Source: Salpingoeca rosetta (taxonomy: Eukaryota > Protista > Choanoflagellata). Taken from it: a DNA stretch of 64,000 nucleotides. A program made the position numbers and the translations under genes. Below, piece by piece: positions 2,020-8,000 of the stretch. Positions within the stretch are counted from its first letter, which is position 1. Each line of letters opens with the position of its first letter. The notes beneath the pieces are model-generated. The model did not search any database. It worked only from the letters and a program-made list of their open reading frames with translations, and was not told where the DNA came from. The stretch spans positions 809,233-873,232 of the forward strand of contig JAWQFM010000020.1 of assembly GCA_033442325.1 (NCBI GenBank), read 5' to 3'.

Positions 2020-5000
2020 ATGACGGCTGCCTGTCGTGTGTCGCGCCGTTCACAGCGGCGCTGGCACGCGATGCCGGCAGCAAAGCTACTGCTGGTGATG
2101 GGTGGCACACTGCTGGTCGCCGGCTTGCTCTGTGCCACGATCCCACAACCAGCAGCCGCTGCGCCGGTGCCAACGCAAGCTTCCAACGCAACCTCTTCTT
2201 CTCTCTCACCCTCAACAGCAACAACAACAACAACAACAACAACAACAACAACAACAACAACAACAACAACTACAACAACAACTACAACTACAACTACAAC
2301 AACTACAACGGCGAGGACCGTGCTTCCTACGGACGATGATGACGACCACAGCCATGGCCACGGCCAACACAATGGGAATGAAACCGGTGCACACTCGTCC
2401 TCATCATCAGCTTCCCACTCGGCGTCACCGTCTGCGGCAACAACAGCAAACGCTTCTGCGCACGCGACCCCGCCTGCTGCAATCACAAGCCCAGGGCCAT
2501 GCTCATGTCCAAGTGAGTGCGCAACGCATGCATGGTTGTTTGGTTTTCTGCACTGGATGTTGCTCGCTGTGTCAAACACACATACACACATAGGCATACA
2601 CTGGACCGCACTGCATTGTGTTGCCCACACTCGGCTGACATGTCCCTTGTCCTTGACCTGCAGACTCTTCATCGCAGAGCAAGAGCACTGCAAAGACCAT
2701 CATCATCTCAGGTGTGTGTGTGCGTGCGTGTGTGTGCGTGTGTGTGTGTGTGTGTGTGTGTGTGCGTGTGTGTGCGTGCGTGTGTGTGTTTGGCTGTCAA
2801 CCTTACTCTCCTCACGCACCTCTTCACGTTTGTTGCTTCCTTTCGTTGCAGTCACTGTGCTGATTGGGTTGCTGGTATTGGCCTTCATCACAATCAAGAC
2901 TGTCAGCATGCGCACCGCCAACCGCACTCAGCCCATGCAAGACGACGACGGCGAGCAGGACAGGTGTGTGTGTGTGTTTGTTTGTGCGTGTGTTTGTTTG
3001 TGTGTCTGTGTTTGTGTGTGTGTGTGTGTGTGTGTGCGTGCGTGTGTGTGTGTCTGTGTGCGTGTGGTGTGGTGTGTGTGGTGTGTGTGCGTGTGTTTCA
3101 CTGTGACACGGATCATGCAAATGGCGGTCATGGGCGTGTGCCTGTGCAACAATGCGACTCTCTCCCCCCTCGCCTCCCCTCTCCTCGCCTGCCTCCTGTC
3201 CGCGATGCCAATCTCACACCACCGTACCCTTGATCATCACCCCACAGACCGAACCCGTTTGCGCTGAACCCCGAGGGCTACTGCGAGCTGCATGTCATGC
3301 TCGAGGAGGGCCGCGAAGACGAGTTCATCCAGTGCATTCGCAGCGCTCTCGCAAGCCTGGTGCGCACCCTGTATGTATGTATGTGTGATGCTTTTGCTTG
3401 CACTGTTCCACACCCCTTTCATATTAACACGAACACGCATGCATACACGCATACACACACGCATACACACACTCCCCCTCTCTGTGCTTGTTCATGTATG
3501 CAGGAGGTTGATCGCTTCCACGAGAACAGCAAGCGCAGCTCCATCGTGGACATGTGCGACCGCTTTGGAAAGCCTCTCATCACATGGGCCATCTCCTGTG
3601 AACGCTACCACGCCGCAAGGTTCGATGCTCGCACATGTGTGTGTGTGTGTGTGTGTGTGTGTGTGTGTGTGTGTACTACATGCTTGTCGATGACTTACCG
3701 TGTTTCGACGACTGGGTTTCTTGTGCCCGCTGATGTTGAAGTTGCATTACTCTCCTCTCCTCACGTCCACATCCCCCCCCGGGTCATTCCCGCCCCTCTT
3801 TGCCAAATCTCCCTCCTCCTCCTTCCTCCTCTTGTCTCCCCCCCCCCCCACGTGCCTCTTCCTGTGCAAACCACGCCAGATTCCTGATTGACCGCGGGTG
3901 CAACGTCAACCTGCCCGACATGCACGGGTTCACACCCCTGCACACGGCGTGTCTCAACAGCACGCCTCCCGCTGTTGTGGCGCAGCTGCTGCTGGACAAC
4001 AACGCCAACATCGACGCGGTGGACCACAGGGGCCGCACATGCATTGCCACGGTCGCCGCAACAGGAAACTACCACCTCGTGAGTTGCACAGGGTTGTTGT
4101 TGTTGTTGTTGTTGTTGTTGTTGTTGTTGTTGTTGTTGTTATTGTTGTTGTTGTTGTTGTTGTTGTTGTTGTTGTTGTTGTTGTTGTTGTTGTTGTTGTT
4201 GTTGTTGTTGTTGTTGTTGTTGTTGTTGTTGTTGTTGTTGTTGTTGTTGTTGTTGTTGTTGTTGTTGTTGTTGTTGTTGTTGTGCACAAGTTACTGTTCT
4301 CATGCTGACGCTTGTGCTTGTGCAGGCGAGTCTTTTGCTGGAGCGCAAGGCCGACCTGAACCAGGCAGATTTCATGGTGAGCTATGCACGTACTCGCCTG
4401 AGAACACCCCGCGCACACGCACGCACACACATACAGCGGATGCATACTTGTCCACCCACACACACACACACACTCTCTCTCTCACCACCACCACCATGAT
4501 GGCCAGGGCGTGACACCGCTGCTTGCCGCTGCTGCCAACGGCCACGCGAGCATTGTGGAACTCATTGTCACGAAGCGGAACTCATCCGTCGCCATGCGCG
4601 ACAACGCGGGTGTGTGCCTGTGTGTGTGTGTGTGTCTGTGTCTGCGTGCTCCCTTGCACACTTGCATATGTGTACCATTGCATGTGTGTGCGATCATCTT
4701 GGCCCATTGCATGCCTCTCATCCTGCACCCGCGCGCGTGTGTGTCCACTCTTCGCCCTGCGTCCTCTTCAGGCAACTCCGCCCTGCACTGGGCATGCCGC
4801 GTTGGCGCAGAGGAATGCGTCAACGTTCTCCTCAACGGTGTGTGTGCGTGTGTGTGTGTGCGTGTGTGCGTGCGTGCGTGCGTGTGTGTGTGTGTGTGTG
4901 TGTGTGTGTGTGTGTGTGTGCTTGTACTCGCTTCCCCATTTGCTCCCTCCTTCGCCTCATGTCCCACTCTTCTTCTCCTCATACACACACACTCACTCAC

Positions 5001-8000
5001 ACACTCACACACGCACACACGCACACACACACATACGCGCGTATTCACGCATCCCCCAACGCGTTTGCTTTGCAGCTCACAAAGTGAGCATCACGGCGGT
5101 GAACAACAACCACGAGAACGCACTGCACCTCGCAGCCAAGGAAGGCAACACCAGCATTGTCAGGTACGAACACCAAACACACACACACACACACATGCGC
5201 ACGCACGCACGCACACACACACATGCACATACGCACGCACACACTTTCAGTCCTTCACACCCTCTCGCCCTTCCCCTTCCCGCCCCCCTTCGCGTCCATC
5301 CTTCGCCCCCTTCCCTCATAGCTTCCCCCTGTTCATCCACCAACACCACATCATGTGTGTGCAGGGAGCTGTTGTACCACCGCATTGACCGCCGCGGGAC
5401 AATGCAGGCCAAGTGCATCAAAGATGTGCGGGAGATGGTCACCCACCTCTCAAACGCAATGTACGCACCGGCTCACGGCTTGTGTGTGTGTGTGTGTGTG
5501 TGTGTGTGTGTGTGTGTGCCTGTGTCTGTGTCTGTGTGTCTGTGTGCGTGTGTTTTCCTTGAGAAAGGGCAGGTTGTCTGCGCGTGCATCGCACTTTGTG
5601 TGTTCAGATGAGTCTGCATCCCCCTGTGTTCAGTCAGCTCACACACCAGCACAACGACAACGCTTGTCTCTCTCTCTCTCTCTCTCTCTCGTCCACCCGC
5701 TTCCCCCACTCCCTCTATTTCCCCAGGGAGCTGCCGGTGCACTATGCACGCAAAAACAACCACTCGGACATTGTCGATGTGATTGACGCGTGGCAGCGAA
5801 AGTACATCCCATCAGCGGATACAGGCAGCTCCGTGTCAACATCCCCTGCACCTGCCAGACGCAAGGGCCGCCGCAGCAAGGCCTCGTCCCCTGCCAAGGT
5901 GCGACAGCGCCGCAAACAACAACAACAGCAACAGCCACTGGGGCGGGTGAAGGAGGAAGAAGTGATTGAGCTGCCGCCTGTTCGTCGCTCGTCGTCGTCG
6001 TCGTCACGACGCGGCCACCACCGCTCCGGGTCGCGGTCCCGTTCGCACTCGCGATCCAGTTCCCGTTCCCGTTCCCGCCACCGCACGGCCAGCGGCGCTG
6101 TTGGCACAATAGGGCGGCGCAAGACCCTGGCCACCGCCACGGCATCCAACACCACGCGGGCGAGCGCGCGTGCAAACTCGCTCGGTGGCGATAACGACAC
6201 GCTGGTTGGTGCTGGGCTCGCGCCACGCAGGCGCTGCCGTACAAGCACGGCGGCGACAGGGCTGACGCGGGTTGGGGGCATGGCAAGCGTTCCGGAGATG
6301 GTGGGTGAGGACGTGAACGTGTTTGAAGGGGATGATGGCGCCGGTGGTGAGCGCGTTGTGCTGCCTGGTGCCGTTGTTGCTTCTACTGCTGCTTCTACTG
6401 CTGCAACTACTACTACTGCTGCTGCTGCTGGCACGACAGGCCCGTCACCACCACCGTCGTCGTCATCGTCGTCATCAACATCATCGCTGCACATACGTGC
6501 GCGCACGGGCTCCATGAGCATGTTGGTGGAGGAGGACGAGGAGGATGACCACGACCACGACCACGCTCGTGATGACACGCATGATGATGTCGATCACGAG
6601 GACGGTCACGCTACAGCGGCATCAGCCTCAACCCCGGCCGGCTCAGACAAGAGCAGCAGCCGTGGCAGCCGTGGCAGCAGTCGTGGTGAACGCACGGGGC
6701 ATCGTGGTCGGCGAACAAACACGCGCGGCAGTGATGGTGGCCATGGCACCGATGGTCGTGGTGGACTCGGTACCCGCCGCCACGCCGCCAGCGCCAGCCC
6801 CACGGGCACGCACAACCCGCGCAAGCGTGCAAACAGGACGCCCAGCACACTGTCATCCACAGCTGCGGCCACAGCGGCTTCGGCCATGATGGCAACCACC
6901 TCCTTCTCAACTATGGGCACCAGCGACAGTGCCTGCAAGCAACCGGAGCCAGTGCTGCCCCCACGTCGTCGCCTGCCGCCGCCACTGGTACGTCGACAGT
7001 CTGGTGGACGAACGGTTGCCGCGGCCCCAGGATCACTACCGCCACCGCCACAACCCCCATCATCATCATCATCATCATCATCATCATCATCATCCACAAC
7101 CACAGCACAGCGTGCTGGTGCTAGCCACGCGTGGACCAACAACAGCGCAACACTGCACGCGCCCAACGACGTGGATAATGGTGGTGGCCTGCCTCTTGAC
7201 CTGTTTGCTGCCGTGAGTCGGGCAGATGAGCCGAGCACAACGGCTGCGTGTGGGGTTGGTGCTGCGCTGATGGCTGTGGATGGCCACGCTGATGACGGCA
7301 TGCACGCTCACGCCGGTGACGTGCAGGCGCAACCGCACTTCAAGCTGCGCTCGTACAACCGTCGCCGCACCCACGGCCGCCACCGCACGCCATACCACGT
7401 GTACCAGGAGCGACGCCTGCCCACGCTTGACGAGCACCCACACGCGCGCACATGGATGGACGAGGAACACCCCGGAACCGCCCAGCAGCTGTCGTCAACA
7501 CATGTGCCGGGCATGTGGGATGAGGTGGACTTTGCAATGCCGCCGCTGCACCAAGACGGAAAGGGCGCACAGGCGGTGCACATTGATTTTGGGCACAGCA
7601 GCCACCACCTCGGTGACGACGACCACGACTACGACTTTGGTGATGCGCAGGATGCGGAGGGCTACACGTCGGCCGCGTATGCGCAGCTGTTTGCAAAGCA
7701 CGATGAGAGCGAGCCGTTTATGCCAAGCACGCCCTCGATGCTGCTGGAACCAACAACAGCAACAACCACAGCAGCAGTGGCAGGGGGCTTGGGCGCTGGC
7801 GATGGTGGTGCAGACGACTTTGACGCGTTTATGAGCGGCCGCAGCCCTGGGCAGGCGAGCCGCGGCAGCAGAGGAAGCAGCAGCACCGGTGGCGTTGGCC
7901 GCACGCCCGGCTCGGAGGACGGTTCGGAGAACCTCAGTCATGACGCAATGCAGCCTGGCCAGGCTGGCGGCATGCACGCGTTTGACACGGGCGTGTTCAG

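Follow-up and report, generated by a model that had tools for sequence, protein, structure and literature searches.

A choanoflagellate gene for a putative membrane mucin with cytoplasmic ankyrin repeats, and its relation to Notch

Fungal sensors of the cell-wall integrity and HOG pathways consist of a signal peptide, an O-glycosylated Ser/Thr stalk, one membrane helix and a tail that recruits effectors. A cytoplasmic ankyrin block behind a single membrane helix is characteristic of Notch; choanoflagellate Notch has been defined by the domain order EGF, LNR, membrane helix and ankyrin, and criteria outside animals are architectural because trees of ankyrin and EGF repeats do not resolve (Richter et al. 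2018, PMC6040629; Gazave et al. 2009, PMC2770060). Here, we analyzed a stretch of 64,000 nucleotides, hereafter the window, from the choanoflagellate Salpingoeca rosetta (assembly GCA_033442325.1, contig JAWQFM010000020.1, positions 809,233 to 873,232 of the forward strand). It harbors a 12-exon gene encoding, in this order, a signal-peptide-like stretch, a Thr-rich stalk, one hydrophobic helix, an ankyrin block and a very long tail. An earlier note, made from the letters of this DNA alone, had taken the gene for a pre-metazoan proto-Notch relative with a bare mucin stalk in place of EGF and LNR repeats, from which an ankyrin domain might be released. Our analysis favors another reading, with a probability of roughly 60%: the protein is probably a lineage-specific membrane mucin of type I whose ankyrin domain serves for docking.

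Gene structure and transcription

The gene extends from position 2020 to 9105 of the window on the + strand. Exon borders and frame were checked by script; GT-AG borders are present at 11 of 11 introns, and the joined coding sequence amounts to 4,815 nt, a multiple of three. The predicted protein comprises 1,604 codons when translation starts at the ATG at 2020 and 1,587 codons when it starts at the in-frame ATG at 2071. In the earlier note the gene had ended at 5830, which cut it short: the last exon stays open to 9105 (1,125 codons) and is contained in an open frame at 5584-9105 with 60-66% G+C over most of its length. The following features were assigned.

1953..2019, + strand: 5' untranslated leader; some transcripts start near 1953 (7 molecules, one RNA run), others cover 1700-1950.
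2020..2512, + strand: exon 1, with start codon at 2020, signal-peptide-like stretch, three sequons, Thr/Ser stalk, Asp/His-rich patch and Cys-Ser-Cys (translation, hydropathy, RNA).
2221..2310, + strand: run of 30 Thr codons (ACA/ACT), the core of the mucin-like stalk (translation).
2497..2505, + strand: Cys-Ser-Cys, 14 residues ahead of the membrane helix (exon 1 translation).
2664..2711, + strand: exon 2, a Ser-rich juxtamembrane piece and the first 5 helix residues (joint in reads and contigs).
2852..2963, + strand: exon 3, the remaining helix (to 2895), a basic stop-transfer K..R..R and an acidic stretch (hydropathy; contig pieces 2849-2957).
3248..3359, + strand: exon 4, a degenerate first ankyrin-like repeat, with NPEGYCEL (joint 3359>3504 in reads and contigs).
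3504..3619, + strand: exon 5, which leads from the last part of repeat 1 into repeat 2 (RNA, translation).
3880..4078, + strand: exon 6, end of repeat 2, repeat 3 and start of repeat 4 (Pfam; covered by contigs that continue into exon 7).
4326..4376, + strand: exon 7, second half of repeat 4 (in reads and contigs, the loose end after 4084 reads exon 7 sequence).
4507..4609, + strand: exon 8, ankyrin repeat 5 (Pfam; joint predicted from GT-AG and frame).
4772..4837, + strand: exon 9, first two thirds of repeat 6, with NSALHWAC (Pfam).
5076..5163, + strand: exon 10, which leads from the last part of repeat 6 into repeat 7, with ENALHLAAKEG (Pfam just below cut-off).
5365..5412, + strand: exon 11, predicted end of repeat 7; an in-frame alternative donor at 5461 (end 5460) adds 16 residues.
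5727..9105, + strand: exon 12, whole (open frame, borders).
5727..5805, + strand: first part of exon 12, the final ankyrin repeat, which forms the cap (ELPVHYARKNNHSDIVDVIDAW) (translation, structure-database search).
5806..9105, + strand: predicted disordered tail of ~1,100 residues including the stop codon, with poly-S, poly-D (15) and poly-Q runs (open frame, composition).
5857..5916, + strand: two basic clusters, RRKGRRSK and KVRQRRK, resembling a bipartite nuclear localization signal, 19-40 residues past the repeats (composition script).
5968..6087, + strand: stretch rich in Arg/Ser dipeptides, with 9 RS/SR among 40 residues (composition script).

RNA reads and assembled contigs were examined over positions 1700-4100. 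Reads of two stranded RNA-seq runs were confined to exons in this interval, with the first mate on the minus strand, which in the usual library type indicates RNA of the + strand. The joints 2512>2664 and 3359>3504 were seen on the + strand in the raw stranded reads. Furthermore, two other studies provide assembled contigs, of 2,580 nt and 900 nt, in which exons 1-6 are joined in one piece and which continue into exon 7. These contigs enter exon 1 at the end of the Thr repeat; they break at the run 2221-2310 because it is a simple repeat. Contigs and reads together thus connect exons 1-7, and the exons of the stalk, the helix and the first ankyrin repeats belong to one transcript. This excludes the case in which membrane and ankyrin exons lie on different transcripts, an outcome that the earlier note had itself regarded as fatal to its reading. 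The joints of exons 7-12 are predicted from the GT-AG borders, the reading frame and a repeat period of 33-35 residues.

A gene-model artefact would mean that the stalk and membrane exons and the ankyrin exons are parts of two neighbouring genes, or that the long tail is not translated. Such an error would be compatible with the predicted joints of exons 7-12 and with the absence of the gene's own protein from both protein databases searched. It is nevertheless extremely unlikely: single contigs of two studies run through exons 1-7, one of them extending a further 1,754 nt; intron borders and joined length agree with one gene; and an open frame of 1,125 codons cannot be a product of chance at the G+C content given above.

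Upstream of 1953, same-strand read depth was found over 1700-1950, and one contig matches 1700-2198 without differences. RNA reads part from the assembly beyond 1848, show a different CA-rich sequence and rejoin it at 1955, whereas one contig agrees with the assembly over the whole region; this discrepancy at 1848-1955 reflects either a CA-rich length variant in the 5' leader or an alternative leader. Simple repeats are also found inside the gene: intron 6 is taken up by ~200 bases of a (GTT)n microsatellite (4090-4290), and most other introns hold (GT)n or (CA)n. Such GT/CA-repeat introns, and the coding runs of poly-Q and poly-T, agree with an origin from S. rosetta. The ACA/ACT repeat of the Thr run may differ in length between strains.

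The predicted protein: stalk, membrane helix, ankyrin block and tail

Translation of the exons returned all the parts that the earlier note had listed, namely signal peptide, poly-Thr stalk, Cys-Ser-Cys, one helix and ankyrin repeats, each in the place where it had put them. The N-terminal hydrophobic stretch of exon 1 reaches a 15-residue Kyte-Doolittle maximum of 2.45 at residue 23 and is followed by AAAAP. N-x-S/T sequons are located at residues 56, 120 and 144 of exon 1, Ser and Thr make up 51% of residues 50-164, and the ectodomain after the predicted signal peptide contains three cysteines only. The membrane helix, TIIIS-V-TVLIGLLVLAFITI, consists of 20 residues and crosses the joint of exons 2 and 3; its mean hydropathy is 2.4-2.85, with 2.85 for the first 14 residues encoded by exon 3, and K, R and R follow. 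The basic flank on the ankyrin side, together with the signal-like N-terminus, predicts a type I layout with a single helix. The gene thus encodes a Ser/Thr-rich, repeat-like stalk on a membrane anchor, as in membrane mucins, with glycosylation of the stalk being predicted.

Ankyrin-like repeats begin ~30 residues inside the membrane; 7-8 repeats could be counted, and their period of 33-35 residues is kept across the splice joints. In the 1,604-residue model the block occupies residues ~219-505. Ankyrin was the only Pfam family found in exons of the gene. Scores above cut-off were obtained for exon 6 (Ank_4 32.9, Ank 31.5 and Ank_2 30.6 bits), exon 8 (Ank 25.7 bits) and exon 9 (Ank 24.0 bits); exon 10 stayed below it (Ank_4 21.4 with a cut-off of 22.7, Ank 17.4 with a cut-off of 21.1). 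The block thus belongs to the ankyrin repeats by Ank profiles above the gathering score and by strong matches in the PDB, which are given below. Scans of exon 1, of exons 4-5 and of the tail returned no Pfam family. Neither SEA nor another self-cleaving module, such as many though not all membrane mucins carry near the membrane, was detected, as no family was found in exon 1 or 2. The tail contains 16% order-promoting residues and no second hydrophobic segment, as determined by a composition script. The basic stretches that the earlier note had likened to nuclear localization signals are present as the two clusters just past the repeats.

Searches for relatives were all done exon by exon. The last exon gave no match in a word-indexed protein search, and an exhaustive comparison with 1.84 billion representative proteins yielded only five weak poly-Asp low-complexity matches. 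Proteins of S. rosetta itself are apparently absent from both protein databases. A search of the genome with exons 4, 5, 6, 10 and 12 revealed no paralog and returned chiefly self-matches. Non-self matches of exon 6 were weak and led to two ankyrin genes, one of the DHHC type and one ordinary; exon 10 had a single weak non-self match (18 bits, E 0.19, contig C32). By these searches the gene is apparently single-copy and its tail an orphan. The best non-self match to exon 6 is located on contig C11 (L002:364-1632, - strand), where ankyrin repeats are joined to a DHHC-type membrane region, resembling ZDHHC17/HIP14 by eye. Just upstream of the gene lies an open frame at 419-1447 (+ strand), probably the remnant of a Helitron transposon: it matches Helitron_like_N in the C-terminal half of the domain (109 bits) and continues with long coding repeats of poly-Q/poly-R.

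A membrane mucin of this build could work as follows. The signal peptide would be removed, leaving ~130 residues facing outward, and the 30-Thr run and the surrounding Ser/Thr-rich sequence would be heavily O-glycosylated, forming a stiff stalk in the cell coat. One helix would cross the membrane, with the 7-8 ankyrin repeats sitting close beneath it, ~30 residues in. The ankyrin block would bind one or more cytosolic partners and keep them at the membrane under the coat, and the disordered tail of 1,100 residues, in which basic, Arg/Ser-rich and long acidic tracts occur, might add docking or regulatory sites. As no enzyme domain is present, recruitment is the most likely mode of action.

The same parts could alternatively make up a sensor of surface stress or contact like Wsc1/Mid2 or Msb2 of yeast, in which the stalk acts as a spring or probe in the cell coat and load alters the engagement of ankyrin block and effector without proteolysis. 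The general build with signal peptide, Ser/Thr-rich stalk, one helix and cytoplasmic tail would agree with such a function, as would the unusually short distance from the membrane to the ankyrin block. However, the sequence resembles none of these sensors, and there is no cysteine-rich head except for the lone Cys-Ser-Cys, so that we regard a sensor of this type as improbable.

Relation of the gene to Notch

Two features of Notch are predicted for the protein, a single type I membrane helix and a cytoplasmic block of about seven ankyrin repeats. The earlier note had seen no EGF, LNR or RAM WxP motif, and this was confirmed: Pfam scans detected no EGF family in exon 1 and no match to LNR (PF00066), NOD or NODP in any exon. 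Furthermore, exons 3 and 4 encode no tryptophan between membrane and repeats; consequently, a RAM WxP motif (hydrophobic-W-hydrophobic-P) is lacking. By the published architectural criteria, the predicted protein is not a Notch.

The genome was also searched with a profile of the LNR family, which gave two matches, on contigs C8 and C12. The C8 gene forms a single open frame of 1,789 codons (L013:1455-6821, + strand; G000:C8:1984454-1989820) and carries the canonical Notch domain order in S. rosetta: EGF-like cysteine modules, a Thr-rich stretch, LNR, one hydrophobic helix with KGAKRR behind it, a disordered region of ~800 residues and, C-terminally, ankyrin repeats. LNR scored 48 bits and Ank_2 133 bits; EGF remained below the Pfam cut-offs, and a second LNR-like module was recognized by eye. 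Its 5' end enters a GT repeat, so that an upstream exon is likely. In protein databases, the ankyrin region of C8 matched long generic ankyrin proteins only, its EGF/LNR region gave no match, and the C8 gene itself was not found there. The C8 gene looks like the counterpart of the Notch-like gene described for Monosiga brevicollis by Gazave et al. The second LNR match, on contig C12 (L011:4804-5965, + strand), lies beside Stealth_CR2 pieces, and the respective gene looks GlcNAc-1-phosphotransferase-like rather than like a Notch relative. To our knowledge, S. rosetta is not among the species reported with an intact Notch; the EGF scores of C8 below cut-off might account for this. Two further components were found in the genome, a presenilin gene and a CSL/Su(H)-like gene spread across exons on contig C1 (L012:5425-8559, + strand; about G000:C1:709400-712600). 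The latter matches positions 1-21 and 104-148 of the LAG1-DNAbind profile and TIG_SUH with 56 bits; a BTD domain was not detected at exon level. Any Notch-type signalling in S. rosetta would more likely have the C8 gene as its receptor.

Kinship of the ankyrin block with Notch was analyzed by several comparisons. HMMER searches of the PDB with exon 6 gave designed ankyrin proteins and ankyrin-1/2 as best matches, with E-values down to 4e-39. Ankyrin-1/2 also came first for exon 10, where Notch was outside the best 60, and designed proteins matched best for the last repeat at the start of exon 12. For exon 9, DARPins, ASB8, ANKRD2, ankyrin, ASB9, TRPA1 and gankyrin were on top; fly Notch appeared with 16.6 bits at about rank 54, aligned at its own ANK5. 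The LNR-bearing C8 gene was used as a positive control, and its PDB ranking likewise did not place Notch first; hence such a ranking has little power, and the negative result for the gene weighs little. BLAST comparison of single exons with 121 long ankyrin proteins and the C8 gene placed C8 near the bottom of the best single matches except for exon 10.

The earlier note had matched the last repeats to ANK5-7 of Notch. Collinear identities were counted with four ungapped pieces (exons 9, 10 and 11 and the first part of exon 12; 86 positions in total), which were placed in their proper spacing, with a tolerance of +/-2, at every position of each comparator. Notch rows were taken from the alignment in the supplement of Gazave et al. 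(PMC2770060), and identities with them were counted by hand. Sea-urchin Notch ANK5-7 reached 32/86 (10+9+5+8; ~37% identity, one single-residue gap), a second Notch row 28/86 and the M. brevicollis Notch-like protein about 22/86. Among 122 long ankyrin proteins with 3,573 register positions, the maximum was 30/86, and at least 28 identities occurred at 1.5% of the positions. The 30 strongest ankyrin loci of S. rosetta reached a maximum of 26/86, tied by the C8 gene. Thus the residue match noted earlier is real and stands at the top of the background built, with a margin of two identities over the maximum of a set without short capped ankyrin domains. By eye, repeats 2-5 showed a generic identity to Notch of about 26-30%. 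For the last three repeats, the match to ANK5-7 is suggestive and not decisive.

These data bear on a stripped-down Notch relative, in which the ankyrin block would share an ancestor with the Notch intracellular domain, EGF and LNR having been lost or never gained; shedding of the stalk and cleavage by presenilin would send an ankyrin fragment with its NLS-like clusters to the nucleus. A single transcript for a type I protein with ankyrin repeats in the cytoplasm, the collinear counts for the two Notch rows, the two basic clusters, the long disordered tail with poly-Q and the presence of presenilin and CSL-like genes would all fit such an origin. However, EGF, LNR, NOD, NODP and RAM are absent, and only ~30 residues separate membrane and repeats. 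Notch is never among the best PDB matches of any exon and appears for exon 9 only; repeats 2-5 do not exceed generic identity; the hand counts are few, and the background to which they were compared was limited as described. Furthermore, the similarity of the LNR-bearing genes of C8 and M. brevicollis to this gene does not exceed background and they are not intermediate, contrary to the prediction from a shared choanozoan Notch ancestor, and the genome already possesses a gene with EGF-like, LNR, membrane helix and ankyrin parts on another contig. We therefore regard a stripped-down Notch relative as unlikely; kinship of the ankyrin block is possible and unproven. From the proto-Notch reading of the earlier note, the layout, the single transcript and a modest match to ANK5-7 can be retained, whereas the absence of the defining domains and of RAM and the PDB ranking speak against kinship. 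A bolder version would make the ankyrin block a true relative of the Notch intracellular domain and, together with the C8 gene, presenilin and the CSL-like gene, the remnant of a pre-animal pathway of cleavage and nuclear entry, with the bare glycosylated stalk instead of an EGF array controlling release of the ankyrin fragment. This appears very doubtful.

We favor a membrane mucin that is specific to this lineage and docks partners through its ankyrin domain. Three points weigh against this reading: the ankyrin block may do more than docking, as its last three repeats appear closer to Notch ANK5-7 than to ordinary arrays; basic clusters follow the repeats, as in Notch; and distant relatives of the full ankyrin block may be missed by searches conducted exon by exon.

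Comparison with known systems

The gene bears on the assembly of Notch before the origin of animals. S. rosetta places an ankyrin block under the membrane on a bare mucin stalk, alongside one gene with EGF-like, LNR, membrane helix and ankyrin parts. If kinship with Notch were true, the gene would give access to the ancestral form of the intracellular half of Notch, and this in a gene-editable organism; if not, it would be one more lineage-specific surface protein and illustrate how easily a Notch-like layout originates by domain shuffling.

Animal Notch resembles the predicted protein in its type I single-pass layout and in the 7-8 ankyrin repeats on the cytoplasmic side, which are followed by basic clusters and by a long disordered tail with poly-Q. 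In contrast to animal Notch, the S. rosetta gene lacks EGF, the LNR/negative regulatory region, NOD/NODP and the RAM WxP motif. The spacing from membrane to repeats is roughly 100 residues or more in Notch, as compared to ~30 residues here.

The choanoflagellate Notch-like genes, M. brevicollis Monbr1:35907 (PMC2770060) and S. rosetta C8, share with the gene a signal peptide or secreted N-terminus, one helix and cytoplasmic ankyrin repeats, and C8 also a Thr-rich stretch. They differ in carrying EGF-like and LNR modules outside, and in having ankyrin repeats at the far C-terminus, ~800 residues past the helix in C8 and roughly 350 in M. brevicollis (PMC2770060). Furthermore, their repeats match those of the gene at background level, with 20-22 bits for exon 6 and a chain count of 26/86.

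Membrane mucins and sensors, such as MUC1 and CD43 or the yeast proteins Msb2, Hkr1, Wsc1 and Mid2, share with it a signal peptide, a Ser/Thr stalk (predicted to be O-glycosylated in the S. rosetta protein), one helix and an enzyme-free tail. The S. rosetta protein differs from them in having neither a SEA domain nor a cysteine-rich head, in showing no sequence similarity to them, and in a tail that holds a folded ankyrin block.

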